The translations under genes and the position numbers were made by a program. DNA of 64,000 nucleotides from Hypanus sabinus (lineage: Eukaryota). The stretch lies in assembly GCF_030144855.1 (NCBI RefSeq), contig NW_026781634.1:62001-126000 (forward strand). Direction: 5' to 3'. This document shows positions 1 to 57,720 of this stretch, in pieces; the first letter of the stretch is position 1; every line of letters begins with the position of its first letter. The notes under the pieces were generated by a model. It was not told the origin of the DNA. It was given only the letters and a program-made list of their open reading frames with translations, and did no database searches.

Positions 1-3000
1 AAAAGAGAATCATGTCATCAGCATATAAGGATATTCTATGTTCCTGCTCTCCTAGCTGGATGCCTGACAGGACTGTCTGCTTTCTTATTGCCATAGCCAG
101 GAGTTCTATGGCCAGTATGAGCAACTTCGGTGCCAAAGGACATCCCTAGTGACGGCCTGAACAAACTTGCACGCATGTCATGCCCACATTCATTAGTTTT
201 CTCTTCAAACCAACACTGTACAGGGATAATGCAGTTAATGCACACAACATCCTCCCCACCCCACTATCAATCTGTTCCATCTGCTCCAGAGGCCACTAAC
301 TCTAACTGAGGGGAAGTGACCCGAGAAAGAAAAACGTACACCATTCCCTGCAGATCCTGTGGGCTGTTCCTTGCAACAGAGAAAGTAGCTCTCCAAAAAT
401 GACCAGAACAGGAAACAACAGACTCAACTTTAAATACTGGGAGTCTCCGTCTGACAAATTACTGTCTTTCCAGTACCTCCTGGTGTAGTCAATAAATCCT
501 CCGATATTTCCATTTCTCAGAAGTAACTCAGTGAGGACAACAGTTTGGGGAAGTTAACGGGACTCACTGAGACCTGCTGACTCGAAACTGGCATCAATAC
601 TCAACGATGGGAATCTGATTTTCCCCCAGCTGCCCATCGCAGAGAATATTCCGTCTCGGGCTCTCCGCCCCAGGGGCGAGGTCACCCTCCCGAATCCCAC
701 CGCCGATCTGCTTCCACAAAGAAAATTCATCACCCATCCCGGACTGAGCATGCGCGTCGTGAATTGCATCATCAGGGCGGTGGGCAAACAAACCTGCCGA
801 CGCTGGAGCTCTGTGGCAAAATGAAATGACGTGTGGTGGGTCTCCCATGTGATCCCGTTACTCCGCTCCTCGCCCCTCACACGCTGCCCAACCCATCGCC
901 CCATTTTCTACATGATTTCGTATTTACACTGAGCTACATTTTTAATTTTCCCTCTGTATTTCCCCGTCCCCATCACTCCACCCGACTGGATCACACATCC
1001 ACGGGTTCGAATCATATCCCGGTCCAGCACACAATCCAGACCCAAACCAGAAATGTGGAGGATTCATTTAAATCAGTCTATATTTATAAACACTAATTTC
1101 TATTCACAATCCTCCAGCCTTACTGGACAGGAACACTGAAATATCAATTTGGAAACAGCAGGTGGTGGACATTCAGCACCTCCAGTGATTAACAAGATGG
1201 CGGCTGCTCTCCCATCTTAATTACATATTCCTTCCCAATCCGTATTTCCTCGATCCCTTCGTTCTCCACATACCTGCCGGCCTCTGTTTTAGGTGAGGAC
1301 GATCACTGAGTCTTCACCGCCCTCTGTGGTGGGGATTTACATACATTTCTCAGCCTCGGAGTGGAGACATTTCCCCTCATCTCAGTCCCGAACAGTCCAC
1401 CCCCTTTTTCAGAGACTGGGATCCCTGGTTCAACCAGCAATGATGTTGTGCATTTCGATGTGTTCACCTCTCAGTCCCCGATTCTCTAAATGAAAGGATT
1501 ATCACATTTGATCTTTCTTCATATGATGACCCCACCACTCCAGGGATCAGTCTGGTGAATCTTCATTGCACTCTCTATAACAAATACTCTCTAACCTCTT
1601 TGTTAATCCTCTATGGAATCCCCACGTTGGCCCAAACACTCAACTCCCACCCCGTCGCTATTTCCACCTTCCCACCTTCCCCCTCATCTGGATCCACCTC
1701 TTTCCCCAACCCCACCCCTCACCTCTTTTCTCTGACTATTTCCAGTCTACTCTTAGTCCGGAGGGAGGGTCTCAGCCCGAAAAGTTGACAGTCCATTTCC
1801 CTCCACAGATGCTGCCCGACCCACTGAGTTCCTCGGGCAGTTTGTTCTTTGGTCTGTATAACCCGTGTTATTATGGGGAGCGGAATTTTACACCATATTC
1901 CAGGTACATCTCAACAAAGTCCAAATAATTGTTAAAGTCATTTTCACTCTTATATCTAATAACTCTTACAATAAATACAATGTACATTCTACCTCCCTCC
2001 CGACCCACTGCACCTCAGTCCCTCGCCATTTAAACACACAGAGGATGCAGGAGTGGATTACCAGGATATTGCCTGGATTCATGGGCATGAGCTATAACAA
2101 GAGTTTGGACAAACTTGTGTTGTTCTTTTTCTGGGGCAGCACAGGCTGGGGTGAGACGATAGACGTGTATATGATTATGAGAGACATAGATGGAGAAGGC
2201 AGACAATATTTTTTATCCTGGTTAGAAATGTTTAATGCAAGAGGCCATGTATTTGAAGTGAGAGGGGGTAGTTTGAAAGGAGATGCGAGGGGGAAGTGTT
2301 TTTAACAGAGAGAGTGGTGGGTTGCTAGGATGTCCTGCCCCGGGTGATGGTTCTGGCAGACACAGTGGTGACATTTAAGTGACATCTAAATTCCTCATGA
2401 ATGTGAGGAAAATGCAGACTTTGTGTCGGCAGAAGGAATTAGTTGGCCTTTTGATTTCAAATTTAATCAGCTGAGGAAAACATTTTGGGCTGAAGGGCCT
2501 GTTCTGTTTGATGTTCTATGTATTTTGTCGAGGGGTTTCCGAGGAGACAGAAGCAAAAGGAGTGAGTGGGAGCAACAGGTCAGCTGGAGCCCAGAGTCGG
2601 AAATGTGAGATCACCCACTACTGTAGGAGAAACAGAAATTGAATGTATTGTCTAGTGCACAAGTACGGGAGGGTACAGGTCCAGAGAAACACTCAGCATC
2701 ACAGGCAAGTACATTCAGATAACAAATTATACAATTTTGTGTCATTATCAATATAGAAGTACACGTTTTATGTCATTAACAATAAACAAGTATATATGTT
2801 GTCAATAATCATAAATATACATTTTGTGCATTAACAATGTATAAAAATACGATTTATTTTACAAGTGCTGACTAGGAAATGTCAAATTTAGTCCCTCAGC
2901 CGAACTGTTGACAGAGTTTGGGAACAACTGGGCTCCAAGCGCCAGACCCTACAACACCCACTGGGAAATCCTGCAGACCGAAGAAGGGTTAGGTTATTCC

Positions 3001-6000
3001 TTTTCTTTAAACACACAGACAACAAGAACTGGAGCAGGCCACTCAGCCCATCCGGAATATCCTGTCCTTCAATAAGACCCAAGACCAGTCCACTCTACCC
3101 CCCCCCAACACCACTCCAATCCACTTCGCCCAGACTATTGGCCCCAATTGCTCTGTTATCTCTGTTTGTCACCACCATGGGCTCAGACATTTCCACAGAT
3201 GAGCTGCTCATGTCCCTTCCCCACTGTCAATGGGCTCCTTCACCCAGTCGGTTCCTTGATTCCCCACTGGGACAAACATCCTCTCAGACTCCACCCTGTC
3301 CACCACTCACACACCATATATATCCTCTCAGTAAAATCCCTTACCACGTCCTTCTGCTGGATCACTCACTCCGTGAGTAGCCTGCATCAAGCCAATGGGC
3401 CATGTAGTCTCGTCCTACTTGTCAGAAATAGATTATAATCTGGCCGTAGAAGTCACTTCACAAATGCACCCAACTTCCCATGGAGGGAAATATAAATAAA
3501 TAAAAAGGAGGGACATTTACTTTGAGGTTTGTTCTGCTTTGACAGGGAGTTTGGGGATGGGAGTGGGAGTCGGATTCATGCGGGGGTAACGCCCTCTTGG
3601 CTGGCCCATCTCCGCTATTGGGTGTAAGCAGTGATCGACATCACTCCTCTATTGACAATAGGGTGGGGTGGGTGGGTCAGGTAATTGTTACGTCAGTCGG
3701 TAAAATTCAACCATCTCAGCGCCCGTGTGATGTAAGGAACTGCACACGTGACATCAGATCCTGGTGTGGGGAGCGCACTCGTGACATCAGGCATGTGGGG
3801 GCGCAGAGTTACGTCACGTGTGGGCGAGAGCTTGCTTTCAAAAGCTGTTCAAAGGACTGTTTTAATGATTTCAGAGGAACAAAGAAGGAAACTTAACAGG
3901 TTTCTTCGCTGAATCAGTAGAGTCCCCTGCTGTGTGACCAGATTTGCCATGTTGTTGATGGAATGGGCGTCGTGGCCCTTTGTTCGAGCTGGGTCACAAA
4001 ACCCCTAATGCTTCTGGGGAGGACTTTACCATGTGATCTGGATTGGGGTGTGTCAGTCAGTGCAGTATCCTGTTGTTTACTAATTTCATAAACAATGGCT
4101 TTACTGATGTGAACCGGATTTGGCTGCAGTGTGAATACAGATTTGTATCAGTTAAGAGAAAACCTCTCGGCCCTGAAGTCTTTGTCTACTGGTAAACTAA
4201 ACACTCTGACAATGTGGACCACAGATACCCCTTCCTCTATGTCAGTGTATCATTCAAACAGCTGATCACTGAGAAGAACTATATTTGTTGGTCACTGAAG
4301 TTCGTCCAGACATAGGTGGATGGAGTTGATGGGGATTTCAGGGATGCCACCTTGAAAGGATGGCTCAGCCAAACCCTCTGTGTTGTCCACCAGCACTCCG
4401 GGATGCCACGGGGAGCTCCTGCAAATCGCAGCAGAGTGGTGACTCCAGCTGACATCAGTAGTTTTCCTGTTCAGGCAGCGGTGAGGAAGGTGCTGATCCT
4501 GGGTTTGCATAAATCGAGCGCTAGTTGCAGTGGAAGTGAGCCGGGACAGAGCCGGACCGCTGGAGCGTCCGGGCTGTCTGGTCTTGCAACGCTGGGTTTA
4601 GTTTCGTGCCCGATCCGAGATTGTGGGTTCCATTAGTTGTGATTCCCCAAGCTGGGAGGGAAGATGTGGGTGATGTGGATCAGTCTATGTGGTGGGGTGG
4701 AGGGAGGTTGTGGTTTTGGGTTATCAGACGCAGCGTGATCGAGAAGGATAGGTCCCAGGAAAATCAAGATGTAAACAAGGGAGGAGGTGGTCCATTGAAT
4801 CAGCCAGGATACGTGACCTTTCAGGAAGCAACAATTCTCTTTTCACGTTAATTACTGACTAATCTTCCTGTTAACATTGTGTTTGTGACAGAGCCCCAGT
4901 GTCTTGGAACAGCTGAATGGCGGGAAACAGAGGGTGATGCTGAGAGGCTGTTTCTTGGCCTCAAGGCCAGTGCCTAGAGATGTTCCACCTATTGTTACTT
5001 GTCATCTGTATCAATCATTTGGCTGGGAATATATAGGGTTGTAAGTTAGAACATGGAACATGAAATCTACAGCAGATTACAGGCTTTTCAGCTCACAATA
5101 TTCTGCCAACCATTGTCTAGAACTACCCAACTGCATAACATTATTTTTCTGAGCTCCATGTACCTATGTAAGAGTCTCTTAAAATACCCTATTGTGTCCA
5201 CAGCCAGCACCGTCACCAGCAATGCATTTCACTCCCACCACTCTGTGTGGAAAAACCCCTGACATCCCTCCTCTGCCTACTTCCAAGCAACTTAAAAATA
5301 TGCCCCCTCATGTCACTCATTTCAGCCCTGGGAAAAAGCCTCATGTTATCCACATGATCAATGCCTCTCATCATTTTGTACACCTCTATCAGCTCACCCC
5401 TACTTCTCCGTCACTCCAAGGAGAAAAGGTCAAGTAAGTTTGCAGCAAGTAAGTTCAAAGAATTACATTTTTGAAAGATATTAAGTATAAACGTTCCCCT
5501 TTGTTTCAATCTCCACACTCAGAAGTGACAAAGAGCTACTTCAGAAGAAGCAAGACCTTGAAATTAGCAAACTCTGAGGGAATGTGATTGACTTTAAAGA
5601 GCTGTGATACTCAGAGCGCATCAACAGACCTGGTGATCACAACTCGGTCTGACAGAGGCATAACTGGTACTTCTGGGCACATTCAGTATCAGTCCAACTA
5701 TTTCCTACCTTTCTTTGTGCAGGTATGTAATGTCTAAAGGACCAGTGTTTGAGTAAACACTCAGCAAACTTTCTCCTGACTGAATCACCGGATTCTCAGA
5801 GTCAGGTGGGTTCTCTCCAGTTGATGCTCTCAATCCTCGGGCTGGTTCACTTGCTGCTTTTCCCTCAGCTTCGGTCGTGGTTTGTTTCCAGTTGTGGAAA
5901 CAAATGTTTCTTCAAATAAATCTCTCACCGCAGGTCTAACTTTAATATGAAAGATATTGAAGTATGTTAACAATGCAAAGGAGAACAAAACATTACTGTT

Positions 6001-8300
6001 CAATGTTCCTAAAAATAAAACCCACTGAAATTTAAACGTTAAGACAAATATAATGCTCTGAGTGAACTAATCTGTAATTGTCCCTCACACGTCACAAAAC
6101 AATATGGGATAAGAAGGAGCCATCATTCAGTCATGGTAAGACATAAGACACAGGAACAGAATTAGGGGATTCGATCCATCTGGTCTGCTCCACCACTCAT
6201 CCATGGCTGATTTTTATTCCAACACCATATTCCTGCCTTCCTCCTGTAACTCTGAAGCTACTTGGAGCAATCACAAATCTTTTAATCTCTGCCATAAATA
6301 TACCCTAATGGCAGCTTCATTCACCCTCTGTGGCAACAAATTCCACAGATCAGCCACCCTTTACTTAAGATATTCTCCTCATCTCATCTCAGTTTTAAGG
6401 GGAAGCTTCTTTATTCTGAGTCTGTGCTCTCAGATCCCAGACTCTCCACATAGAGGAAATATCCTCTCCATGTCCACTGTATCCAGGCTTTTCAGCATTC
6501 GGTAGGTTTCCTTAAACAAGCACCACCTCCACCCCCACCGTCCCTCTGAACTCCATTGAGCACAGGTCCAGGACCATTGACTAACAGACATGTGATAGTG
6601 AGGGGAAATTTCCAAACACAGTTTGAACACTGAACCCCTGGGTCCAATTCTATTGCTGCAAACATTTAATGACCATGAGAGGGATGGAATAGGAACTCAT
6701 TCTCTCCTCAGATTAGCACTCACTGCCTCCAAAGGAACTCCAGAAACAAACAACTGAGACCAGACCGGAAACACTTGATCAACACCTCATGAGCCCGAGA
6801 TCCATGATCCATTTCACCAGAGTCAAAATCTGCATTTCACCAAGGTCACGCAGCTGAATGTGCCACTTACCGACCCCAGAAACCTCGCACATCGTCCCCA
6901 CATCAGGGATTTCCCAACAACCAATGTCCAGCAGCCCCGGACCTGATTCACTGTGGAAGGAGGAACATTCAGCCCCACCGACAGAAGAGCTGACCTGGGC
7001 AAATCCCAAATACTGACAGTTCCATATTCCCGGAGGCGGCATCTCAGGATTGCAGTCCAAGCACTAATTTGCTGCCAGTAACACGCTGCAGTGTGTCGGC
7101 CATTCAGAGTTCAAAAACTAACACTCTAACATTAACCTATGGTAGAATGGGAAATGACTGTGCCAGATATTGAGCTGGAAACCTGGGCATGGGCCAGCAG
7201 CAGGCATGGATTCGTTTCACATGGTCTCCAGCAGCTAAACTGAACACATTTTATCATTATATCGTAACATGGGATCTTGTCCAGCACAATTGGCCGTAGC
7301 ATTTCCTGTAGGCTAACAGGAATAACAGGCTTTTCATTTCAAATTGAAATTAAATGCTGGAAACTCGGTACATCAGATTGGATGTGTGGAAAGAGAAACT
7401 GTGGAAGACTCAGTATCAGAACTGATGCTGCCCGATCTGCTGAACGTTTCCAACATTTTCTCTTTTTACTTTAAATGATGCACAACTACTGACTGATTAC
7501 AAGATGTTTGTGAAAGCCTGAACAAAGTTGCACAAATGTAAGTCCCACATTCTCTTCATTCCAACACAGGGTTAATACAGTCGGTACAGTCAATGCTCAC
7601 AACATCCTCCCCACCCACCTATCAGTCTGTTCAATCTGCTCCCTAGGCCACTAACTCTCAATGAGGGGAAGTGACCAGAGCGCGATAAAAATATGCACCA
7701 CTCCCTGCAGATCCTGTGGGCTTTTCCTCTCCAAGAATGATCAAAACAGGAAATAACAGACTCAACTTTAATCGTCTGATTAAGATTAACACAACGGCCA
7801 TTTGGTAACATTGAAACTAAAATTGTAGTGACTGTCTTTATCCTTCCTCATTCTGCATTAAATAAATCCTCTGGTAGTTCAGGTAACAAATACTGATTTC
7901 AGAAATTATTCAGTGAGGCAAAAGACAACGGTAGAAGAGGTATTGTTGATATATATCATCGAGGTCGTGGGGTTAGGAGACTGGACAGACATTGAACAGA
8001 GATTGCAGGAGATGTGCAAATAGAAACTTGTGTAAGCAGGTGGGAGAAGGGATCAAGGACGATCATTGATGGTCCTCCAGCAATACACAGATACTGAATT
8101 AACAGTACATACTATGTACTAATATCACAAAGATAAAACAACAGGAACTTTGGCATTAACCCTTCTCTCCGAAATATATTTTATCAAACACCATGGAAAG
8201 TATCCCCAGGTTGGGTGTGAAAGTCTCAGAGCCCGGACCGACCCCGGCAGGTTCTGTCCAGGAAACGGGGTGAGACCGCCAGTTCGGGAAAGTTAACGGG

Positions 8301-8640
8301 ACTCACTGTACAACATCGCTCGGGATAGAGTACTCACACATGGATCTTGTCGACCTCGCTCCGGAGAGAATGATCCGAACCCCCGGCTCCCCGCCCGAGG
8401 GGGCGAGGACACCCTCCCGATCTGGATTCCGCAGACGAACCACCGCTCCGGACCTGCTTCAACAAAGACGGGGGGAAACAAGTCGCAGCCCATCCCCGGC
8501 TGTGAGCATGCGCAGTTTTCGTATTGCGTCATTAGACCGGGGCGGGGCCACGGAGACAAACCCGCAGATGTTGCCGATCTGCGGTAAAAGAGAATCACGT
8601 GACGGTGAGGGTCGCCCACGTGACACGGTGTTTGCTCCTC
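8301..8640 (-). promoter_or_regulatory. CpG-rich promoter/first-exon-like element
   Basis: Two CACGTGAC E-boxes (~8596, ~8617), GC box GGGGCGGGGC (~8539), NRF1-like GCGCATGCTC (8504-8513) and donor CA|GTGAGT at 8306-8301. Paralog at 562-860. Confidence 0.45.
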
Positions 8641-9439
8641 GCCCCTCACACTCTGCCCAAACCATTTTCCACATTATTTCACAACCCTCCCATCTCAGAC
8701 ACATGTTTCTGTCCGATCCTCATTTCCTCGATCGTGGATTTAATTTCCGTCTTCTGCAGCCCCGTGTTGCCCCAACCACTCACCTCCCACCCAGTCACTA
8801 TTTCCAACTTCCCACCTCCCCCCTCAGCTGGATCACCTCTCACTCTCCAGCTCTTGCCCCATTTCCCCCCCTCACCTGTTTTCTCTGACTATTTCCCGTT
8901 GACTCAGTCCAGAGGGAGGGTCTCAGCCCGAAATGTTGACGGTCCATTTCCCTCCACAGATGCTGCCCGATCCACTGTTTGGTCTGTATAACCCGTGTTA
9001 GTATGGGGAGCGGGATTTTACACCATATTCCAGGTACAATCTCAATAAAGCCAAATAATTGTCACTTTGCCCGGATCACTGGCCCCGCTTGCAGGGCAAC
9101 AGTCTGTCGGTATTTCCCCCAATATGGTGAATCCCTCTGCTCGTACCACCGTGGGCTGAGACATTACCATAGATGAGCCCCTCCTGTCCCCACGGGGACA
9201 AACATCCTTTCCGCCCACTTCACACCATCATCATGCTTTCAATAAAATACGCCCCCCGGGGAACCGGCATCAAACCGACGGGCCGAACGGTCTGCTCCTA
9301 CCTCTCAGCGATACGTCAGACTCCGGACACAAGAGACGCTTCACAAACGTTTCAGCTTCCCTCGGAGGGCAAGTTTACTTTGAGATTCGTTCCGCTCTGA
9401 GGGAAGTTCGGCCGGAGCGGGAGACGAACTCAGCGGGGA

Positions 9440-9720
9440 TAACGCCCTCTCCGCTGGTCCGCCTCATCTATTGGATGTAATCAGTGATTGACATTTCTGC
9501 GCACCAATGGCAATAGCGCAGCTCCTGCTGCGTCGGCTGTCAGCGGTGGGGGGGGGGGGGGGAGGGCTGGTCACATTATTAGTTGCTCAGCCGTTAAACC
9601 GATAAAGCTCGAGCTCACCAGTGCGTGGATGACGTAAGACACCGCGCACCCGTGTGTGATGTCAGCCGCGTGAGTGCGCCTGTGTGACGTCACCTGTGGG
9701 GGAGTGCTCGTATTTAAAAA
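9440..9720 (+). promoter_or_regulatory. Promoter-like element (CCAAT, CRE, TATA-like)
   Basis: ATTGG/CCAAT, TGACGTAA, TGATGTCA, TGACGTCA (9685-9692) and TATTTAAAAA (9711-9720). Paralogs at ~3600-3845 (+), ~30890-31130 (-) and ~36465-36810 (-). Confidence 0.4.
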
Positions 9721-10930
9721 CGCATAAATGGACTATTGCTATGTATGTGCCTTGGGAGATCAACGAACATGTTTCTGCCCAGCGCGCACGCTCTTCAACT
9801 TTTATATCATTCCATAAGATAGACTGTGTTCTGTCTCCGGACTTATAGGTAATACTGCATTGGTCTCTGCAGTCTAGATCCTCTATCCAGTATCGAAGAT
9901 TCCGAAAATCTTGGAAAAGTTGTTTCTCTGGAATTTCCCAATCATCTCTAATATCCATGTACTTATCAAAGTCTGTGAACCGATTAGCACCAAATGTGTG
10001 CTGTTTGTCTAATTTATATCAATCTGCATTTTTACAGCATCCACACCAAAACCTGCTGAACTGCATTCCAAGAAAATGTGCCTTTTAGTCTTCCCATCTG
10101 TTTCTGGGTAAAATTCATTTGTAATTTCCCCAAACTTGGAAAATATCTTCTGGATAACATTTCGAAGTTTCTCTAGCCGATCTGGTCCAACTTGTGGTAC
10201 ATTATCCACAACAATAACAGAATCTATTCCATCAGCTTTTCGAGGTTGATCGTTTAAAATAGCACCCAGCAATTCCTCGTCGGGGAGATCATCCACGAAA
10301 CCTTCGTCTGGTTCCTCCAACTCCTCCAACGCTCAGAGCTCCGTGGAGGTGCTGACACCGACAAGCTGGGCAGTAAAGTTGATGATTGGGAGGAAGAGGT
10401 TGCTGAATTTTTTGTGACAGAAGAAATTATCTCTGTTGGAGATCAGGAGTAACCTTATACGGTGTCACCACATTTTTCAGCGAAGTTGATTTCTCCTGTG
10501 TCACCTGGAAGTTCAATGTGCTCCACTCTGCAAAGATCATCACAGTGCCGTTTCCTGTATCAGTCTCCGTTGTGCTGATAAAGACGCTGCCTTCACTTTT
10601 ACTAATTGTGAATATATTTCACGAAATAGCAGCAGCCCTGGAGTTTACTTTGTGTAATTGTCACTAGTTACTGTGGAAGCTGTCATTGGTTTAAGTAAGA
10701 ATATTATTGAGGCATTCTTTCCTGTAGCCATGATCTATTTTTACACCATGGTAAATTAACATTACATTTTGTATGGAGCAGTATTGAGACTACAAAGAGA
10801 ATTATTACGTATTTTAGTGTACACTTAAGACACGACAGTGGACTGTAGTCAGTTTATCCAGTCAGTTTATATCTGACATCAAATGGGATAAAATAAAGCT
10901 TAGTAACACAGAGAAAACACATAAGTGGAC
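9717..10930. pseudogene. EIF3B: eIF3b processed pseudogene with 5' inversion
   Basis: Minus strand ~10329-9734 encodes intronless eIF3b RRM and downstream region ([24 protein letters not shown]...KLDKQHTF...EERARW) with a frameshift and a TGA near 10020-10035. Plus strand 10327-10452 encodes the eIF3b C-terminus (ELRGGADTD...[23 protein letters not shown]). AATAAA at 10892-10897. TSD copies at 9717-9733 and 10914-10930. Confidence 0.93.
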
Positions 10931-11357
10931 GTTTCTTATGATTTCAGTGGGACAAAAACATTAATCACGGGTTTCACCACTGAATCCAGAGTTGTGAGAC
11001 GTAAAGTCCCCTGTTACGTGTCAGGCTGTGCGGTGTTGCTGGTGGAGTGGGCAGCGTGGTGTTTGTCTCGATTCGGGTCACACACCAGAATTGCCAGCGG
11101 GGTCCACTCACAGTGTATTAGTCAACAGAAAACCTCTCGTCCCTGCAGTCTTTGTCTCCTGGTAAACTCAACATCCTGACACTGTGGAACATAGATACCC
11201 CTTCCTCTTTAAAGTCAGTTATTCATTCAGACAACTGATCGCTGAGAGAAATTAAATTTATTGGTCATTAAAGTTCACCAGTTTCGTTTGGACAGATTTG
11301 ATGAGGAGTTCGGGGTGTCACAGTGAAAGGGCCGGACGGTCGAACTCTCTCCGTTGT

Positions 11358-11878
11358 CCAAACATCCTTCCAGGTGAGGCGACACTTTACCTGTGAATCT
11401 TCCGGGGTCGCCCGTTGTGTCCGCTGCTCCCCATGCGGCCGCCTCTACACTGGTTACACCAGCTCCTCCGCAGTTGTGCGGGGTATGGTTGTTTTATTTG
11501 GGGGGGGGGGGGGGCGGATCGATGTTATTGTTCCCTTTTGTGCGGGAGGGGTGAGTTTTGGGGGTTGATGATCCGGATGCCTTTCTTTTTGATGCGGGGG
11601 GTGGGGAGGGAATTTGAGTTTTCTCTCTGAACGTCTTTCATGCTGTTTCTTTGTTTTGTGGTTCTCTGGAGAAGATAATAAAACGCAAGAGTTGTTTATG
11701 GATACCTGCTTTGGTAATACAGTGACCTTTGAACTGTCCGCTCCCAGCTGGTGTCCAAACATTTTCATTCCGATTCCCATTCCCGTTCCGATGTGCCTCC
11801 TTGTGTCAAGATGAGACCACCTTCGGGGTTCAGGATCAGCTCATAATAATCCGTCTTGGTAGCCTCCCAACTACATGA
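11358..11878 (+). mobile_element. Penelope-like element GIY-YIG endonuclease remnant, interrupted by another repeat
   Basis: SFQVRRHFTCESSGV..CVRCSPCGRLYTG at ~11365-11455. Resumes at ~11770 with HS.SD...IIRLGSL. Confidence 0.75.
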
Positions 11879-12942: not shown

Positions 12943-15900
12943 ATTAGATCCAAGTAACATGGACCCGGGGATCTGAGGAGAGAATGAGTTTGTATTCCAT
13001 CACAGAGAGGCTGCGAGTAAATGGGCTGTTCTGTGTTGGAACTGGTAGAAATAGACCTGGGGGGGGGGGTTCAGTGTTTGAACTGTGTTTGGAAATTCCT
13101 TCTCACTGTCAGCTGTCTGTCAGACAGTGAAAATCAAACAGAAACTCAAGTTGCTGGAAATCTGCACTAAAAATGAAAAATTCTGAATCCATTCTGAAAA
13201 AAGATTGCGAACCTGAATCGTTAAATTTGTTGCTCTCCCCACAGCAGTTCCTTAACTTTTGAGCGATTCTGATGATTCCGGTTTATTTTTATTACATTCA
13301 CTCTGGAATGGTTTAAATTTCCTGAGAGTTGTGGGAGTTGTGGAGGGATGTATGGTTAAGTAAAGCTACCGAATGCTGGAAAGACTGTATACAGGGGACA
13401 TGGAAAGGATGTTTCCTTCAGACGGAGAGTCTGTGATCTGACAGCACAGTCTCAGAATAAAGATGCTTCCCTTTAAAACTGAGATGAGAAAAAAATCCTC
13501 AGCCAAAAGACGTGTGATCTGTGGCAATTTTTGCCACAGTGAATGGTTGAGGACATTGGATTGGAGCAGACTCGATGGATCGAATCACCTAATTCTGTCC
13601 CTACATCTTATGTCTTACCATGAATGAACGATGACTCCTTCCTATCCCATATCAGATTTTGTGACGTGTCAGGGACAGATTTGTTCACTGAGATCGTTAT
13701 ATTTGTCTTCAATGTTTAGATTTCAGTGAGCAGAAATATTTTGTTCTCCTTTGTATTGTTAATATGCTTCATTATCTTTAATGTTAATGTTAGACCTGCG
13801 GTGAGAGAAGAAAAACCCAAAACTGGAAGCAACCCGCGACTGAAGATGAGGGAACAGCACCAAGTGAACCAGCCCGAGGACTGAGAGCACTGACTGGAGA
13901 GAAACCCTTCTGACTCAGGGTTTCCATTGATTCAGTCAGGAGCAAGTCTGGTGAGTTTCATTTACTCAAACACTGGTTCTTTAGACATTACAAGCCGTAT
14001 ATTCCGGAGTGTAAGCCGACCCCTTTTGTAGATGTTTTTGATTTAACCAGAAACAATCACACGATCTCACATGCCGGTACTCAGCTTTGCAGGATCCGGA
14101 ACCTGGAAATTTTGTGAACCGGGACCTGCTAAGAAAACAGGCTTACACATTGAAGAGCGTTATAAGCAAATTCTTAATAAATAAACCAGGGAGGGAAATT
14201 TTGGATTATGTCTCCAAGGGTAAAGAAGCCTCTGAAAAGCGCCCCCGCGAAACCATTTGGCACCCATCGTAATATCGTTAAAACATAACACGGGGTGGCG
14301 TGATCAATACATGTATTCAGTTTTGAGTTTGCGACCACCATGTACAAAAGATTAAAACGAGTGCGATATGGTGCTGGCTTCAAGCTGAAGGTTGTTGATT
14401 TTGCGAAAGGAACGAATAACTCTGCAGCTGCTGAGAAGTTTAGTATAAACGAGAAACAAGTGAGAGAGTGGAGAAAGGCAGAGGACACGCTGAGGGAAAT
14501 GCCAAAGTCGAAATGTGCAAACCGCAGGAAAACATGCCAGTGTCCAGAACTGGAAGAAAACGTTTTAGAGTGGGTGAATCACCAGCGATAGTCCGGTTAC
14601 ATTGTTACCGGAGAAATGATTCGAGTTCAAGTGTTGAAATCGACCGAAAGCCACCGTGAGGGCAGCGAAAATTTCAAAGCTACGCGAAGTTGGTGCACCC
14701 GATTTATGAATAGATGTGATCTTGGGTTGAGACAAAAAACACAGATTGCTCAGAAAATTCCCTCGGGGTGGTGTTTATGTTCAAGAGCGCTGCTGGATAG
14801 ACGAAGCCGGTTGCTTGACGTGGGTTAAAGAGGTGTGGCGTCAACGTCCCGAAGATTTTGGGAGGGAAAAGTTGCTACTTGTCAGGTGAGACAAAAGCAG
14901 CATCGAAAGCTGAAAATAGAGACATTGCAGTTATCCCCGGTGGTTTGATCTCCGTGCTCCAGCCACTAGATGTGAGTTTAAACAAACCAAAGGATTCATG
15001 CGTTGAGATTGGAACGAATTTGACTCAAAAGCAACCAAGAAATCCGACCTGTCTTCCCTGTATTTGATTTTCCAAATTTGGCACCCTCTGTATAAGCCGA
15101 CCCCAAACATTGGAATTTACGGTATCTGTACAAAATAAAGTAGGGAATAGTTGAGGTGAGAATGAATGTATCAGTTAAGTCTGTCTGACCCAGTTGCAAT
15201 CTCTCCAGGTCTGGTAATGTACTGTCAGTATACCTGCTCTTTAAAGTCACTCACATTCACTCAGTGTTTGTTCATTTGAAGATCTTGCATCTTCTGAAGT
15301 AGCTTTTGGTCAGTTCTGAGTGTGGAGAGGGAAAGAGGGGTGTTTATATTTACTATCTTGCAAAAAGAAGTAATTGTTTGTAATTACTTGCTGCAAACTC
15401 ACTCCCCATATCCTGTACATTCTCCACCGGATTATTGACATAGATGACAAGCAGCAATGGGTGTCACCCTGGGGAGCTCCAGGAGGCACGGGCCTTGACT
15501 CCAATAAACAGCCTCCATTCATCACCATCTGCTTCCTACCATCGAGCTGTTCCCAGACGCTGGGCTCTGTGACAAACACAGTGTTAGCAACGAGATTAGA
15601 CAGTGATCAATATAAAGAGAGATTTGTTGCTTCTTGAAAGCTGTCTGATGCAATGGACCAGATCCTCCCTTGCTTACAACTGATTCTGCCCTAGGATCCA
15701 TCCTCCCAGGTCACACTGTGTCCGATAACCCACATCCTTAACCTCCCTCCACCCCGCCAGTAACCCCACAATTTTCCCACCATTTACCCCACACCCGTAC
15801 ACGCAAACAGATCCACATCACCAACATCCACTCTCAGAGCTTGGGGAACCAGAAGTAACTGATCCTACATTCCCCGGCCCAAACTGCAGCTGTCTGGCTC

Positions 15901-30379: not shown

Positions 30380-33300
30380 AGAAGAGATCTCCGCGGAGCC
30401 CCCAGTGGCCGGACGTCCCCACATTGGTCGAAAGCCGGAGAGACAAGATGTGGGCTCGGCTGTCCGGCCCTTTCTCTGCGACACTCCCGGCTTCTACATC
30501 AACTCCATCCATCCGACTTTGGGAAAACTTTAACAATCAAGAAGCGTAATTCCTCTCAGCGATCAGCTGACTGAATGGATTTTAGGACTTAAACGCTGCA
30601 GGACTGAGAATCTTCTGTTGTCTAATACACGATGTGCAGACCTGGCTGGCGTTTCTGGTTTGCATTGGTAAGCAGTTGTTTTTCAAAATACTGAACAACA
30701 AGATACTGCACCAGTTAAAACGATAAGAAACAGCATCAGCCTGGAAGATCCTCCCCCAAAAAACTGGGATTTTGTGACCCAACTCGAGACAAACAGCACA
30801 CTGCCCACTCAACAAGTAAGATAGTTCAGCCGGGCGATTCCCATGATTGATTTTGTTTTCCTTTGGAAATCAAATTAAACATCCATTCAGGTATTTTAAA
30901 GCACAAGTGCCCCTCTCCCCACACCGAGATCTGTCGTCAAATGTGCGGTATCATACACTCGCTACCCAGCTCGCGCAGAGACGAGTTAATGGCTGAAGTA
31001 CTAATCAGTAACTTCTCCTCCAAAAGCGCTCTCACAGAGTATTCACAAGCCGTGTAATTCACCTTGATGCGAAGAGAGGTCATTACTGGTTACACCCAAG
31101 CGGAGGCGGAGTAGCCAAGAGGGCGTTATCTCTGCTGATCAATATCTCCTCCCCCCACCAACTCCCCGTCAAAGCGGAACAAACCTCATAGTGAATGTCC
31201 CGATTTTTGACTTATTTTCATTTCCCTCCGAGGGAAGTGGGGGAGTTTGTGAAGCGTCTCCTGTGGCCGGAGTCTGATGTATCACTGAGAGGTAGGAGGA
31301 GACCATTCGGCCCATCAGCCTGATTTTGGCTCCACGGGGAGGGAGGTATCCCGGAAGAACAAGGAGGGAGACAGGGGGGATCTTATTGAAAGAATAAAGA
31401 TGGTGTGAGAGGGGGCGGACAGGATGTTTGTCCCGGTGGGGGCAGATGGGACTCATCTGTGGAAATGTCTGAGCCCATGGTGGTGGCGAGCAGAGGGATT
31501 CGCCTCATTGGGGACAAAAACCGGCAGACTGTTGCCCTGCAAGCGGGGCCAATGGTCCAGGAAAAGTGGGGATTGGAGTGGTGTTGGAGGGGGGGCAAGG
31601 GTGGACTGGACTAGCGTCTTATTGAATGACAGGGCAAGCTAGAAGGGCCGAGTGGCCTGCTCCTGTTCCTGTTGTCTGTGTGTTTAAAGAGAAGGAATAA
31701 CCAGACCTTTGTTGGCCTTCAGGATGTCAAAAAAATGTGTGTTGTAGGGACAGTTCGGATCCAGTCAACTGTGTCAACAATTTGGCTGAGAAGGAAATTG
31801 AACATTTCCAGTCTGTTAGACTACACCTGGAGCATTTCATACTGTTCTGATCGCCCGAGTCTGGGGTTTGGAGAGGGTGAGAAGAGGATTACCAGGATAT
31901 TGCCTGGATTAGAGGGCATGAGCTATATTGAGAGGTTGGACAAACTTGTGTTGTTTTCTCTGGAGCAGTGCAGAAAGTGTCAGGTTACTTCAAGTAACAC
32001 AGTGTGGTGAGCTTTCCATCTTATCACACTGGGGGCATTCAGTTTGCTTATAACAGCAGAATGGAAACCGTCCTTGAGCCTGGTGGTACATGCTTTAAGG
32101 GTTTAATGTGTGAGGTGAGAATGTCCCAGGTTGTGGTGATTTTTGAGTACAAGGCCTGTTTTACTGAGGCGGTGGGAAGTGTAGCCAGAGGCCGTGGAGG
32201 GGAAGTTGGTTTCTATGATATACTCAGCTGTGTCCACAGCTCTCCACTGTTCCTTGCAGTCATGGGCAGAGCAGTAGCCAGACGGAGGTGTCAGGTATTT
32301 GGACGGGATACTTTCCATGGTGCGTTAATAACATTTGGTTGAGGGAGAAGGGTATTTGCCAAATCCCCTGTTGTTCTATCTTGGTCATTTTAGAATGACC
32401 AAGTACCTACTATTAATGTAGTCTCTGTGTATTGCTGGGGGAGCATCAGTGACCATCCTTGATTGCTTTCCCATCTGCTTCCATCTGCTTATCCCCTTCC
32501 CATCTTGTTCAATCTCTGTCCAGCCTGTATCTCACCACCTCTGTGGTATACAGCAATCATCTTGTTCAATCTCTGTCCAGCCTGTATCTCACCACCTCAG
32601 TGGTATACAGCAATCATCTTGTTCAATCTCTGTCCAACCTGTATCTCACCACCTCAGTATTCAGCAGTCATCTTGTTCAACCTCAGTCCAGCCCGTATCC
32701 CGTCACCACAATGATAAATATCAACAGTCTCTCTTCTACCGTTGTCTTCATTGTGAAGTATTTTGTCTCTCTGAGTTATTTCTGAAATCGGTGTTTGTTA
32801 CCTGAAATTACCAGATGATTTATTCAATACAGCACGAGGTAGGGTAAAGACAGCCATTACAATTTTAGTTTCAATGTTAACAAATGACCGCTGTGTTAAT
32901 CTTTCTCAGACGGAGACTCTCAGCGTTTAAAGTTGAGTCTGTTATTTTCTGTTTTGGTCATGTTTGGAGAGTCACGTTCTCCGTGGCCAGGAACAACCAC
33001 AGGATCAGCAAGGAGTGGTGCGCATTTTCCTCTCTGTGTTCAATTCCCCTCAGGGGGAGTTAGTGGCCTCGGGAGTAGAAGTAACAGATTGATAGTGAGT
33101 TGGGGAGTATGTAGGGAGGACTGTATTAACCCTGTATTGGACTGAAGGGAAAACTAATGAATGTGGGACTTACATTCGTGCGACTTTGTTCATCACAAAC
33201 ATCGTGTACTCAGTCAATAGTGCATCATTTAAAGTAAAAAGAGAAAATGCTGGAAACGTTCAGCAGATCGGGCAACATCTTGGACAGTTCCAGTTCTAAC

Positions 33301-36300
33301 ACAGGGTCTTCTACAGTTTCTTTTTCCACACATCCAATCTGATGTACCGTGTTTCCAGCAGTTTGCATTCAATTTTGTGTTAAAACCATTTTATTCCTGT
33401 TAGCCTGCAGGAAATGTGATCGTTGCGTAGGACAAGATCCCATTTTCTTCAACTCCAGATATGCCGCCAGATCTGAACCCACTGTGAGGACATTTATATC
33501 TCACACGAGGCTGTAATTCTCCGTGTCCTGACACCTACTAGCCCTTCCCAATCTGCACTCGCTGACAATGACGGTGACAGATGTCCCAGACTCTGGGGCT
33601 CAGTAACAAACACAAAATTAACAACTAGATTAGACAGTAACTAATATGAAGAAAGTAGTGTTGCTTCCTGAAAGGACACACGAGCTGAGCTGTCTGATCC
33701 AACTGACCAAATCCTCCCTTGTTCACAACTTAATTGGCCAAGTGCCCATCCTGCCCGAGTCACGCAGCATCTGATACGCCCAGTATCCCACCCTCCCTCT
33801 ACGATGCCAATCGCCCCACCATTCAGCCCAGACCAATACACGTAGACTTATGCCCTTCACCCACATCCACCTTCCCAGCGAGGGGACACAGAATTAACTG
33901 ATCCCACAATCCCGGCTCAGGCGCAAAACTAAAATCGGGGCTACAAGACTGGAGAGCCCGAAACTTCTAGCTGTCCAGCAGAGCTCGATCCGGATCATTT
34001 CTCTTTGCAGACGGCCCTCGATTTACACAGACTCGAGATAAGCCCCTTCCTCACCGGCACCGGCAAGAGTACTGTACCGCCGGTGACACCGCGCATGGAT
34101 TTTGCAGGAGGTTCGCCGCGGCATCATCCGTGGCCAGAACGTTCGGCTGTCCGGTTCCTTCACTGTGGCACCCGAACTCCACATCAACTCCATCCATACC
34201 ACCCTGGGCAAACTTTAATGGCCAACAAACATAATTCCTCTCAGTGATCAGCGTTCTGGATGATTCACTCACTTTTAGAGTAAGGGCTACCTACAGTCGA
34301 CATTGTCAAAGTGTTCAGCTTCTCAGGAGACAAAGACCAAGGACGAGAGGTGTTCTGTTACCTGATGCAATCTGTGATTTCCCTGCTGGCAATTCCAGTT
34401 TACATCAATAAAACTGTCGTTTATGAAAATCCTGAACAATGAGACACTGCAGCCAGTCCATCCAAAAGCAGACTACCCTGGACAGTCCCTAGACCACTCT
34501 GATGACGCATTGATCACATTGCCATGCTCATATTCCCAGATGGACGGTGGTTTCTATTGCATTCATTGTTGAAGCGGCTCGGCGGCCGATGATCTGCAGT
34601 TTCGGGATCGCGACAAGCCCCTCGCTCCTGGGTGAAGGAGCCGGGGGTTGGATCACTGACTGCATGGCAAAGGCATAAAGTTCACATCGTTGAGTATTGA
34701 GACCAGTCCCGAGTGAGGAGGTCTGATGCTGGGCAGGGAGTCCCGTTAACACTCTCGAACTGGAGGCCTTCGCCCCGCTTCCTGGACGGAACCTGCCGGG
34801 GTCCCGGGACCTTCACACCGAAACACCTGGGATGAGCTGCCGTTCAGCCCCTTTTGTTCTGCTATTCGGTAGGGGTGGAGATGAGGCGTTGATGCTGGAA
34901 GCACACCCTTCTCTCGCCCGTTTGGACAAGGCAGTGAGATCTACATCCGTCACGTCCTTTCGTTGTGGGTGGGGAATATGCTTTTCTTGACTCCATTCCA
35001 CTCTTATGGCCTGCCGAAATGCAGCCAATGTTTCTGGGTGTATTACCCATTTATGTGAGAATTTAGCCTTTTCTATTTTTCTGAGCTTCTCAGAAAGGTG
35101 TACACATCTGAGTATTGAGACCAGTCCCGAGTGAGGAGGTCCGATGCTGGGCAGTCCCAGGATCCTGTGTCCCACAGTGGGTTTGATTTCACTCCTGCTC
35201 ACCGCACCCCCACCCCGGCACTGATGATATAACAGCCAATATCCGCATGCTCACTGTTCCTCGTTGGGCTGCAGCTTCCTTTCCATTCTGCGTTGGGATT
35301 GTCTGTGAAGTCGGGATTGGGAGAGGACCCTCGGCCCCGGGGGCAGTGAGCCGGGAGAAGCATTACCAGCACAGGGTGAATTAAATGCAGCACGAAGCAG
35401 GGTAACAGGAGCCATTACAACTTTATTTTCATTGTTATGAATTCAGCCGCATTACTCTTGGTAATGATTAAACTCACAGTTTACAATGAAGAGCTTTGTT
35501 ATCTGCCTTTTTTTGTTTTTGGTGAGCCACGTGTTCATTGACAGCCGACGAAGGACAGTTGCATGATTTTTTTTGCTCTCTGATCACTGCCCCTCTGTGA
35601 AGAGATAAGTGAGCTCAGGAGCAGATGAAACAGATTGGCAGTGAGGTGGGGAGGGGGGAGTATGTGGTGAACTCTGACTGTATGGAATGAAGAAAAGACT
35701 AATGAACATGGGCATTGCAAAATCTGTTCAGGACGTCACAAACATCTTGAAATCAGTCAGTGTTTGTGCATTAATTAAAATAAAAAAGAGAAATTGTTGA
35801 AGATTGTGGCGGACCTCCAACCTCCTAGATAACCACGTCTGCACCAGGTGCACCAAGCTGCAACTCCTCAGAGAATGCGTTAAGAAACTGGAGCTGCAGC
35901 TCGATGTCATTTATCTCATAAGGGATGCTGAGGAAGTTCAAAGTAAAAATTATCGGAGTACCTTTAAAATGATCATCCCCTCAAAACTAATCAGTAAACT
36001 CCAAGATCTGACCGCAACACCTCCTTGTGCAGCTGGATCCTGGATTTCCTCACTTGTAGAACCCACTCAGTTCAGATCCGCAAAAACATCTCCAACACAA
36101 ACTCCATCAGTACCAGAGTACTACAGGAATGCTCTACTCGCTTTACACCTGTGACTGTGCCCAGCTCAACTACTATATATGTTTGCTGATTATACCTCTG
36201 TTGTGGACTCTGTCAAAAGGGTTGATACAGCACTGACTGAACCACCTCAGATCAGATCACACTGGTAAGTCCTCACCAGAAACATCTGAGGTTTGGTGAC

Positions 36301-37200
36301 CCAACTCAAAAAAGAGGCCACACTGCCCACTCCATCAACAACATGGTGAAGCCGGGCACATAGCAGGGACTTTCCCTAACACAACACTGGCTTCAGTGAT
36401 GAATACTGTTAATGTTCCTTCTTTTTTCCCCTGAAATCTTTAAAAAAAAAAGTTCATTGAACAGCTTTTGAAAACAAGCTCTCACTCACGCGAGACGTCT
36501 CTCTGCGACACCACACTGGGATCTGGCAACAGTTTGCAGCCTCATATGCCTAATGTCACGTATGGGTTCCCCACAACTGGATCTGACGCCCGTCTGCGCC
36601 CCCACATGCCTGACGTCCCGTCTTCAGTTCCTTCATTCACACTGGCGCTGAGACAGTTGAACTTTACCCGCTAAGCTAACAATTACCTGACCAACTCATC
36701 CCACTCCATAGTCAACAGAGGAATTGCATTCTTCCCATTAGTGCGAAGAGATGTCAATCACTAGTTACACCCGATAGTAGAGGCAGACCAGCCGAGAGGG
36801 CATTACCCCCGCTGATATCGACTCCCGCTCCCGGGTGGTACTCACCGTCAAAGCGGAACAAATCCGATGTCCAGCATTTTGAATTATATCCATTTTCCTC
36901 CAAGGGAAGTTGGGGGTGATTCTGAAGTATCTCCTGTGGCCAGTGTCTGATGTATCACTGAGAATTGCTCAGCCCATCGGTTGATGATGGTTCCCCCGGG
37001 GAGGGAGTGATCCCAGCAGGAGGAGGCAAAGGGAATAAATGTGGTGTGAGAGGTTGGTTAGGATGGAGTCTGAGAGGTGATCAAGGAGTAGGATGGGGGA
37101 AGGAGCCCATTGTCAATGGGGAAGGGACATGAGGGGCTCGTCTGAGCCCAGGGTGGTGATGAGCAAAGATATTCACCACTTTGGGGGCAAACTCTGGCAG
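30380..37200 (-). repeat. Further inverted and rearranged module copies
   Basis: 30460-30570 and 34145-34255 match the reverse complement of 4260-4340 and 11235-11340. 31080-31820 matches 2880-3640 and 9080-9490. 32400-33450 matches 7270-8110. 36460-37200 matches 3160-3850. Confidence 0.85.
32501..32705 (+). repeat. 57-bp minisatellite, about 3.6 units
   Basis: catcttgttcaa starts at 32501, 32558, 32615 and 32669. Confidence 0.92.
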
Positions 37201-49748: not shown

Positions 49749-51474
49749 ATGTTCAACAGAAACACAAGGAGACTCTGCGGGCAAAAACTGAAACACTGAG
49801 AGTGAACACAATCCTGATGAGGGAGAAGGTGAAGGTTTTCCAACTGGTTGATCGATAGGCTGAGCTCACGGTCATTTCTACTGTTCGAGATCGGACACTG
49901 GTGGAACATGAGCTGCTGGCAAGAGGCAGAGACCACGAGGAGTGGAGAGAGAAATATCTCCGTGGAGAGCTGGAAAAATTCGGGACTGAAACATTGTTCC
50001 AGAGCAGTAACTCCAAATCTGGGAGCTCGGCAGCAGTGGCTGGAGCCCCGGGGATCGGGAAAACAACGATGGTACAAAAGATTGTTTACGACTGGGCCAC
50101 AGGGAAAATATACCAACAATTCCAGTTTGTGTTCAGTTTCAAATTCCGGGATTTAAACTCCATTAACCGTCAAACAAGCCTGATGGAACTGATTCTGGAT
50201 CAGTATCCTTACTTTGGGAATATCCTGAGAGAGGTCTGGAAGAACCCAAAGAGATTGCTGTTTATATTTGATGGTTTGGATGAATTCAAGCACAGAATCG
50301 ATTTTGCTGACAGTCAGAGAGACACAGAACGCAAGCACCAGTGCCCAGATCCCGAGTGCTGGTGTGAAGTGTCTGACATTGTGTACAGTTTAATCCAGGG
50401 CAAGCTGCTCCCAGGGTGTTCAGTGCTGGTGACCACCCGCCCCACTGCGTTACATTTATTGGAAAAGGCTGAGATCAGTGTCTGGGCTGAAATCCTGGGA
50501 TTTGTTGGTGAGGAACGGAAGCAATATTTCATCAGGCATTTTGAAGATCAGACGGTGGCTGCAGCTGTTTTCAAATACATGCAGGAGAACGAGATCCTGT
50601 ACACCATGAGCTACAACCCCTCCTACTGCTGGATCCTCGCTCTGGCATTGAGCCCCTTCTTCACACAAAATGTCAGGGACCCGCAGAAAGTACCCAAGAC
50701 CATCACCCAACTGTACTCCTACTATATTTACAACATCCTGAAAAACCACGGCCGAGAGATCGAGAACCCCCGTGAAGTGTTACTCAGGGTTGGTCAGATG
50801 GCCTTCAGAGGAGTGTCCGAGAAGAAGATTGTGTTTACGGATGGAGATTTGATCAAGTACAATCTGCAGCCTTCCCAGTTCCTGTCCGGGTTCTTGATGG
50901 AGCTTTTGGAGAGGGATGATTCTGGCCGGTGCGTGGTGTACACATTCCCACACCTCACCATCCAAGAGTTTATAGCTGCAGTTGCACAATTCCTGACTAT
51001 ACATCCCGGGGATATCCTGAAATTTCTCACTGAAGCCCACAAGACGACAGATGGGCGATTTGAGGTATTTCTCCGTTTTATTGCTGGTCTCTCCTCCCCA
51101 CTGACAGCTCGGGGCCTGGAGGAGCTTCTGGGTCCATTTCCTCATCAAACAACCTGCCGGGTGATTGACTGGGTGAGGGAGGAGGTTAAACGCCAGAGTG
51201 GTAACACGAGGAGCGAAGCTGGTAAAAGGAGCCTCCTGAACACATTACACTACCTGTTTGAGTCTCAAAATTGTGGGCTGGCTCAGGCCACAATGGGATC
51301 TGTGGAAACACTTTCATTCAGTCGAATGCTACTGACCCCGATTGACTGCGCGGTCCTGTCTCATGCCATCGGAATCTGTGATACAATAAAACATCTCGAC
51401 CTTTTGGACTGCCACATTCAGTGTGAAGGAATCCAGCGGCTGGGGCCCGGGCTGCACAAGTGCCAGGAGTTGAG
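49749..51474 (+). CDS. NACHT exon (pre-NACHT/FISNA-like region, NTPase, winged helix, HD2, first LRR), containing the premature stop
   Basis: Walker A GAPGIGKT at 50042-50065, Walker B LLFIFDGLDE, sensor VTTRP, winged-helix YTFPHLTIQEFIAA. Acceptor cccattgaag ends at 49748, donor AG|GTAACT at 51475. The frame continues upstream of the listed ORF as DVQQKHKETLRAKTETLRVNTILMREKVKVFQLVDR*AELTVIS. Confidence 0.95.
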
Positions 51475-52039
51475 GTAACTTCATTTGTCTCTCACTCTGT
51501 ACTGTGATACTGTTCCAATTCAAGGTTATTTCAATGTTAAGGAATTTGGATGAAACTGTAGTGAATCAGATAGTAAAGAACTCTGTCAAATGAGCAGGGG
51601 ATCTGTCAGTAATTCCCCAGTCAGGAAGGTTCTGTGGTTTCTTTGTGAGGGGATGTTAGACTTCATCAGATCAGTGAACAATGGCCATGAGTTTAATGGT
51701 CGTAAATGACAGGGATGGCAGTGTTTTTGCTGCCTGTGACACGTCCATTGACAATGCCCATGTCACTGTTTCTGACACCCAGGCCAACACTGATTGCAGC
51801 AGGTGGTTTGGAGATTTACACCCACTTCCCCTGAAGGTCAGTGTGCTGACCCAGTGAAAGCTATTGTCTCCCCCTTCCCATGTGTGACTGTCACCATAAC
51901 TCCACCTGCGTCATTTTGCTCTTTACCACCATATACCCAGACATCACGTGGCCATCTCCTCTCCGATTGTGGGTCTCAGTTCAGGACAACCTTTCCCGCG
52001 CAATATATGTCCAGATCACCTCCCTAGTGGGACAGATAC

Positions 52040-56889: not shown

Positions 56890-57720
56890 ATCGATGACTT
56901 ACAAAGTAGCCGAACAAATAGTGGATGTATTAGTGATAATTTTTCAAAACTTTAGATTCTATATTAGTTTCTGAGAATTGGAGGGCAAACGTAACCCCAC
57001 TTTTTAAGGAAGGAAGGAGAGAGAAACCGGGGAATTATAGACCGGTTAGTCTGACTTCGGTGGTGGGGAAAATGCTAGAGTCAGTTATCAAAGATGTGAT
57101 AACAGCACATTTGGAAAGCGGTGAAATCATCGGGCAAAGTCAGCATGGATTTGTGAAAGGAAAATCATGTCTGACGAATCTATAGAATTTTTTGAGGATG
57201 TAACTAGTAGAGTGGATAGGGGAGAGCCAGTGGATGCTGTATATTTGTATTTTCAAAAGGCTTTTGACAAGGTCCCACACAGGAGATTAGTGTGCAAGCT
57301 TAAAGCACACCGTATTGGGTGTATGGTATTCATATGGATAGAGAATTGGTTGGCAGACAGGAAGCAAAGCGTGGGAATAAACGGAACCCTTTCAGAATGT
57401 CAAGCAGTGACTAGTGGGGTACCGCAAGGCTCAGTGCGGGGACCCCAGTTGTTTGCAATATACATTAATGATTTAGACGAGGGAATTAAATGCAGCATCT
57501 CCATGTTTGTGGATGACACAAAGCTCACACCAGCCTGCGCCGCTCTGGAGAAAACAACACAAGTTTGTCCAGCCTCTCGTTATAGTTCATGCCCTCTAAT
57601 CCAGGCAGTATCCTGGTAAGCCTCTTCTGCGCCCTGTCCAAAGCCCCGATATCATTCCGAAAATGGGGGCAACAAGAACTGTATGAAACACTCCAGATGT
57701 GGTCTAACTAGTTTTATGAA
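56890..57720. mobile_element. CR1 fragments (+ strand RT, then - strand 3' part)
   Basis: [31 protein letters not shown]...[19 protein letters not shown]. Confidence 0.88.

Follow-up and report, generated by a model that had tools for sequence, protein, structure and literature searches.

An EIF3B retrocopy with an inverted 5' half in a ray genome and its probable origin by twin priming

How can one spliced mRNA come to lie in a genome as two pieces that point in opposite directions? EIF3B-derived DNA at positions 9717-10930 of the window, by which we mean the whole 64,000-nt stretch that was analysed, consists of two opposed pieces, the first on the minus and the second on the plus strand, and a sequence-only reading of this stretch had proposed that they are an eIF3b retrocopy with a complete signature of L1 twin priming in a probable cartilaginous fish. 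Insertions of this 5'-inverted, or twin-primed, kind were reportedly described by Ostertag and Kazazian in 2001. Here, we ask what was inserted at this locus, what the insertion site looked like before, and by which route the inverted half is likely to have arisen.

A spliced EIF3B mRNA in two opposed halves

The parent gene was represented by the little skate, with protein P0212 and gene locus L001, and all breakpoints given here were read against this one skate ortholog. Window positions 9734-10913 form a single 1.18-kb insertion that contains exclusively EIF3B mRNA sequence, with 78-89% DNA identity to the skate EIF3B exons and 3'UTR. Its parts are as follows, in window coordinates.

9728-10330, minus strand: inverted EIF3B cDNA segment, skate CDS nt 450-1074, residues 150-358 of 819
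10275/10274, 10082/10081, 9963/9962, 9905/9904 and 9785/9784, minus strand: exon junctions without intron sequence in the inverted half, from the skate alignment
10327-10452, plus strand: sense EIF3B coding segment, comprising the last 22 nt of exon 17 and the last coding exon, with the junction at 10348/10349
10453-10913, plus strand: EIF3B 3'UTR, 78% identical to the skate 3'UTR, with homology ending near 10908

Read from 10330 down to 9728, the inverted half is colinear with its stretch of the skate CDS, with 512 of 629 aligned columns identical, and two antisense stretches within it match solved eIF3b chains: 10329-10033 corresponds to residues 156-247 (E 3e-39) and 10018-9719 to residues 253-353 (E 1e-35). 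These two minus-strand pieces differ in frame, and the stretch between them contains an in-frame TGA at 10021-10019 and, near 10030, the deletion of a single nucleotide; the other indels of the inverted half measure -12, +3, -2, and -1. The half is an internal fragment of the mRNA, with neither a 3' end nor an A-tail of its own. It derives from a region of the mRNA that precedes the sense half, sits on the 5' side of the insert, and touches the 5' copy of the target-site duplication (TSD) with the base that is 3'-most in the mRNA.

The sense half starts at about nt 2335 of the skate CDS and runs to the mRNA 3' end at 10913. Its coding part, 10327-10449, holds the last 41 codons (matching residues 774-814 of solved eIF3b chains, E 1e-13) and is followed by the stop codon TAA at 10450-10452, and an AATAAA signal at 10892-10897 precedes the end of the mRNA by 11-16 nt. 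The sequence-only reading had described an antisense N-terminal piece joined head to head to a sense piece with the last 41 codons and AATAAA, with the middle of the CDS missing; this arrangement stands in all respects except for the term "N-terminal", as the inverted half covers residues from about 150 to 358 of the 819 in the skate protein.

Seven skate introns are missing from the insert, as the inverted half crosses five exon junctions and the sense half two, and relative to the skate ortholog each of them is absent precisely; the check for lost introns that had been suggested thus found the copy colinear with spliced skate EIF3B over all seven junctions. One of the two junctions in the sense half lies in the 3'UTR, at 10462/10463, where the first 10 nt of the 3'UTR are joined to a downstream 3'UTR exon. 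The skate has a matching 3'UTR intron (GT-AG, 2,394 nt, L001 24235-26628) at the same distance of 10 nt past the stop. The called skate gene on L001 stops at the stop codon (L001 24224). The retrocopy is in this sense a fossil of a ray EIF3B mRNA, which records a spliced intron 10 nt past the stop that is common to the skate gene. Together with the three matches to solved eIF3b chains, the loss of the seven introns bears out the proposed eIF3b origin, and at the level of sequence comparison the insert is confirmed as an intron-free EIF3B retrocopy, or processed pseudogene.

Among the 279 eIF3b sequences retrieved, the best protein matches of the copy are those of bamboo shark, skate, and chimaera, and the best matches of the insert as DNA and as protein are elasmobranch, in agreement with the cartilaginous-fish host that had been suspected. 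Word-index searches with teleost and then with skate eIF3b returned no further batoid protein. The searches also brought up protein P0270, a sequence of 1,012 residues labelled 'UNVERIFIED_CONTAM' from an Acipenser sinensis assembly, whose match to skate eIF3b spans 47% of the skate protein at 90% identity and scores above the skate self-match; judging from this score, a duplicated or chimeric eIF3b may be present in it.

The insert has no second copy in the window. It leaves out the 5'UTR and the first ~450 nt of the CDS, and about 1,260 nt of CDS (skate numbering), roughly 40% of the mRNA, are missing between its halves. An internal gap of ~1,260 nt seems unusually large for twin priming. 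The copy carries one stop codon and several frameshifts; it is a dead pseudogene and has no coding function. At positions invariant across six jawed-vertebrate eIF3b sequences, 30 of 156 residues are changed in the copy, and both halves are equally decayed. Sequence comparison suggests that the nucleotide decay of the copy is roughly 8%, a value consistent with the two differences found in the 17-nt TSD.

The insertion site, its uninterrupted counterparts and the junctions

The boundaries of the insert, the junctions within it and the related sites elsewhere in the window are listed below.

9711-9716, plus strand: T-rich side of the endonuclease target, TATTT/A, read directly; with the A-run, TTT/AAAAA
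9717-9733, plus strand: 5' TSD copy, AAAACGCATAAATGGAC; the start is possibly one base earlier, at 9716 (17-18 bp)
10914-10930, plus strand: 3' TSD copy, AAAACACATAAGTGGAC; nothing resembles poly(A) except the A-run with which it opens
9728-9732, plus strand: microhomology at the 5' junction, ATGGA, the reverse complement of TCCAT (Phe-His codons)
10327-10330, no strand assigned: inversion junction, CAAC, common to the parental sequences of both halves (skate)
3839-3859, plus strand: empty site 1 (paralogous), a single TSD-homologous copy with contiguous flanks
30877-30900, minus strand: empty site 2 (paralogous), a single TSD-homologous copy with contiguous flanks
36450-36470, minus strand: empty site 3 (paralogous), a single TSD-homologous copy with contiguous flanks
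149-4389, 7266-11360, 30456-33446 (minus) and 34141-36864 (minus): four copies of a duplicated unit of ~3-4 kb, 70-80% identical

The two TSD copies are identical at 15 of 17 positions and bracket both halves of the retrocopy, and their length lies within the roughly 7-20 bp expected of an L1-type insertion. A repeat search passed over the TSD pair, in which the two mismatches leave no exact 6-mer seed, and returned a chance match of 13/17 inside the 3'UTR; given that chance match, the TSD was tested against controls. Shuffling two 51-nt boundary windows 2,000 times never reached 15/17, the best score being 14, and the same best score was obtained from ~1,980 pairs of real sequence at the same spacing, again with no pair at 15/17. 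Allowing up to 2 mismatches, these are the only two copies of the 17-mer in the window, so that the 17-bp duplication with 15 identical positions that had been claimed is confirmed as unique in the window and unmatched in the controls.

TATTT at 9711-9715 directly precedes the TSD and yields a target of the form TATTT/AAAAA, or TATTT/AAAAACGC over 9711-9723, in line with the TT/AAAA-type target that had been read here before. As the TSD opens with an A-run after TATTT, the bottom strand reads TTTTT/AAA, which is a site of the type cut by L1 endonuclease, whose nick-site consensus is of the TT/AAAA type (PMC2912911). The sites in paralogous units read TTTCAAAAG and CTTTAAAAT. At the other end of the insert, the 3' TSD copy, which starts with A, adjoins the mRNA 3' end of the sense half, as predicted by first-strand priming on a T-run. 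No remnant of a poly(A) tail is recognisable at the insert 3' end, where there are just 4-5 A that also begin the 3' TSD copy. An L1-type event normally leaves a poly(A) tail, and the tail of this retrocopy may have been short or may have been lost.

With the insert taken out, the two flanks joined through a single TSD copy can be aligned, without a break, to each of the three remaining copies of the duplicated unit. The possibility that the 17-mer occurs twice in uninserted paralogous modules was looked for, and it is present once in each of the three. These empty sites are 70-78% identical, and they are paralogous, neither orthologous nor allelic. Since the retrocopy is carried by one unit only, it is younger than the duplications that produced the four units. 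The unit gave no match in Rfam, and its ORFs gave no match in Pfam. Elsewhere around the locus, an inverted duplication (4619-6713 versus 12971-15874, 74-83% identical) encloses the retrocopy region.

The region of the insertion site at 9653-9720 is promoter-like, with paralogous sites near 3780-3860, 30880-30960, and 36450-36530. Upstream of the insertion there is a 28-nt direct repeat with the CRE-like palindrome TGACGTCA at 9686-9693 and TATTTAAAAA 18 nt later, and ACGTC together with a T/A-rich box is retained in the paralogues. It is our guess from these motifs that the CRE and TATA region could be a promoter; if so, the retrocopy would have separated a TATA-like box from its downstream sequence. 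About 160 nt upstream of the insertion lies a G-rich run (9543-9561, with 14 uninterrupted G within GGTGGGGGGGGGGGGGGAGGG) that is absent from the paralogous units.

Both junctions show short homologies. At the inversion junction, CAAC opens the sense half (CAACG, exon 17) and is also the reverse complement of GTTG at skate CDS 450-453; it would supply the complementarity needed for the annealing of two cDNA 3' ends. At the 5' junction, the alignment to the skate CDS ends at nt 1074, equivalent to window 9728, and EIF3B homology reaches 5-6 nt into the TSD. An overlap between the 3' end of the TSD and the end of eIF3b homology had been claimed and is borne out by ATGGA against TCCAT; in an alignment of eight vertebrate eIF3b sequences, every one has Phe-His at this internal priming site. 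The C at 9733 is target-derived, because it is present in the 3' TSD copy and in two paralogues, and it makes a terminal mismatch of the primer unless the ray gene differs here or a later substitution occurred. Checking the junctions for microhomology against the skate thus returned CAAC and ATGGA, and as read from the skate ortholog the exact lengths would be 4 nt and 5 nt. The copy agrees in this with human 5'-inverted L1 insertions, of which 95% carry microhomology at the 5' junction, about 70% of it of 2-5 bp, and whose TSD lengths peak at 14-16 bp (PMC2912911).

Twin priming and its alternatives

The best explanation, and in our view the probable one, is that a fully spliced EIF3B mRNA, ending at its polyadenylation site, was inserted in one event of target-primed reverse transcription that involved twin priming, the enzyme being one of the L1 clade that acted in trans. 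The event would have begun with a nick of the bottom strand at TTTTT/AAA (top TATTT/AAAAA) by an endonuclease of the L1 clade (L1/Tx1-type), after which the T-run would have primed a first cDNA from the mRNA 3' end, copying ~590 nt of 3'UTR and the last 41 codons. This first cDNA would either have stopped early, after ~590 nt, or have lost sequence later. A nick of the top strand 17-18 bp downstream would have freed a 3' end (...ATGGAC) able to anneal to UCCAU in exon 6 of the same mRNA, from where it could prime another cDNA, about 625 nt long, that reached back as far as the 3' end of exon 1. Both cDNAs would then have paired at their 3' ends via CAAC/GTTG and been sealed, and the product would be an inverted piece from exon 6 back to exon 1 followed by a sense piece from exon 17 to the mRNA 3' end, with a TSD copy on either side.

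The locus matches the structure expected of twin priming in that two opposed segments lie within one TSD pair, the inverted one comes from further upstream in the RNA and occupies the 5' side of the insert, and internal RNA sequence is lost. Insertions by twin priming have been described as containing an internal deletion (PMC2837659), and 5' inversions accompany TSDs of 10-20 bp (PMC4245944). The signature had been called complete: the geometry, the TSD and both microhomologies justify much of this description, whereas the missing poly(A) tail and the gap of ~1.26 kb do not let the word "complete" stand.

An enzyme of the L1 clade is indicated by the TSD of 17-18 bp, by the motif at the nick and by the fact that a polyadenylated mRNA was captured. 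A Pfam scan of 28 ORFs found no L1-clade element in the window, and returned only a NACHT gene, one RVT_1 fragment and DNA-binding domains of pogo/Tigger type. Because no L1 is recognisable in the window, the enzyme step is one that we infer, as is the order of the steps. The proposal of an L1-clade enzyme that mobilised mRNA in trans and made a 5' inversion therefore holds for the structures that it predicted, while the identity of the enzyme follows from TSD length and target motif.

The RVT_1 fragment, a piece of LINE reverse transcriptase at 57167-57619 (plus strand, E 1e-13), has no match among solved structures, and an atlas search assigned it to no clade. In a remnant of a pogo/Tigger-type DNA transposon at 14340-14828 (plus strand), a DNA-binding domain of the Brinker/CENP-B kind (E 6e-13) precedes a Tc5 transposase HTH domain, whose score (E 2.5e-4) falls just short of the curated threshold. 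The NACHT gene is an ORF of 525 residues at 49901-51478 (plus strand) with NACHT, NOD2 winged-helix and NLRC4 HD2 domains, and has no paralogue elsewhere in the window.

Of the alternatives, an insertion resembling twin priming by a LINE of another clade (CR1, L2 or RTE) fares best and is still unlikely. The absence of a poly(A) tail would suit such an origin, as it is what 'stringent' LINEs that do not use A-tails would leave, and so would a window without L1. Enzymes of the CR1/L2 type, on the other hand, select their own 3' ends, and the TSDs that they leave are short, ~5 bp in the case of ZfL2-1 (PMC4245944), whereas a TSD of 17-18 bp, a nick at TTT/AAAAA and an insert end at the mRNA cleavage site, 11-16 nt past AATAAA, are features of the L1 type.

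Dual priming, in which the nicked strands would be primed on two separate EIF3B mRNA molecules and yield the same geometry, seems to us quite improbable. It has been put forward for primate L1 loci with a comparable architecture (PMC2837659), and with a gap of 1.26 kb nothing ties the two halves to one RNA molecule. Both halves come from the same gene, so that one RNA is a more economical source than two copies of an mRNA in one complex, and the upstream/downstream order of the halves is required by twin priming on a single RNA and not by dual priming. The end product of the two processes at the locus is identical.

A third possibility, that a 5'-truncated EIF3B retrocopy later underwent an internal inversion and deletion, has very little probability left. 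Inversions and deletions do occur in the region, the inverted duplicates at 4619-6713 and 12971-15874 being an example; a later rearrangement would nevertheless have needed a breakpoint exactly at 9733/9734, would have had to leave the TSD intact and would have had to create 5 nt of homology besides, and the microhomology at the junction fits annealed cDNA ends. Least probable, to the point of being barely credible, is an artefact of assembly by a wrong join of reads or haplotigs at about 10327: the region is repetitive at a scale of several kb and the junction is known from the assembly alone, and yet the insert is unique in the window, one TSD surrounds both halves and has its empty form in the paralogues, and both halves have decayed equally, features that a false join would not create. 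Two independent retrocopies are ruled out by an inverted half that has no 3' end of its own and by the single TSD pair.

Relation to known insertions

If the copy arose by twin priming, as we think probable, its closest counterparts are in primates, where 5'-inverted retrocopies of mRNAs are known (PMC2912911). Like the 5'-inverted pseudogenes and L1 copies described there (PMC2912911), the EIF3B copy has one TSD pair of the 14-18 bp class at a site of the TT/AAAA type, consists of a 5' inverted and a 3' non-inverted segment of one RNA with internal loss, and shows microhomology at both junctions with no extra nucleotides there. It differs from them in its ray host, in a poly(A) tail that is absent or at most 4-8 nt long, in its gap of ~1.26 kb, and in having an enzyme that we infer. 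With the primate twin- and dual-priming loci (Srikanta et al. 2010, PMC2837659), it shares an inversion-deletion within one TSD pair and a first reverse transcription that stopped early. Those primate loci have inverted poly(A)/poly(T) at the 5' end (PMC2837659), whereas the EIF3B copy has no A/T homopolymer and its first cDNA would extend ~590 nt into the mRNA.

Retrocopies as such are common in this group of hosts, and 14,081 of them have been counted across the cartilaginous-fish genomes of the 244-genome Vertebrate Genomes Project set (bioRxiv 10.64898/2026.06.26.734816), a study in which twin priming and 5' inversions are unmentioned. The EIF3B copy resembles the conventional processed pseudogenes of cartilaginous fish in being intronless, dead, species- or lineage-restricted, and derived from a housekeeping mRNA, and is unlike them in being split into two opposed halves. 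A limited literature search, which is weak evidence of absence, found no description of twin priming in cartilaginous fish.

In cell culture, 5' inversions were seen neither for L1 in chicken DT40 cells nor for zebrafish L2, and the conclusion from the experiments was that their formation depends on the LINE species as well as on the host (PMC4245944). We consider it an even chance that many natural 5' inversions exist in the ray genome, the EIF3B retrocopy among them, and that twin priming is old in the L1-clade enzymes and host repair of jawed vertebrates. If this is true, it would contrast with the suggestion from cell culture that such inversions are a peculiarity of human L1 in human cells (PMC4245944). 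The EIF3B copy is a clean example of a known by-product of insertion, formed by a mechanism known in mammals and with no sign of function, and it provides a data point that retrocopying of mRNA with a long TSD, a TT/AAAA target and a 5' inversion occurs in a cartilaginous fish.
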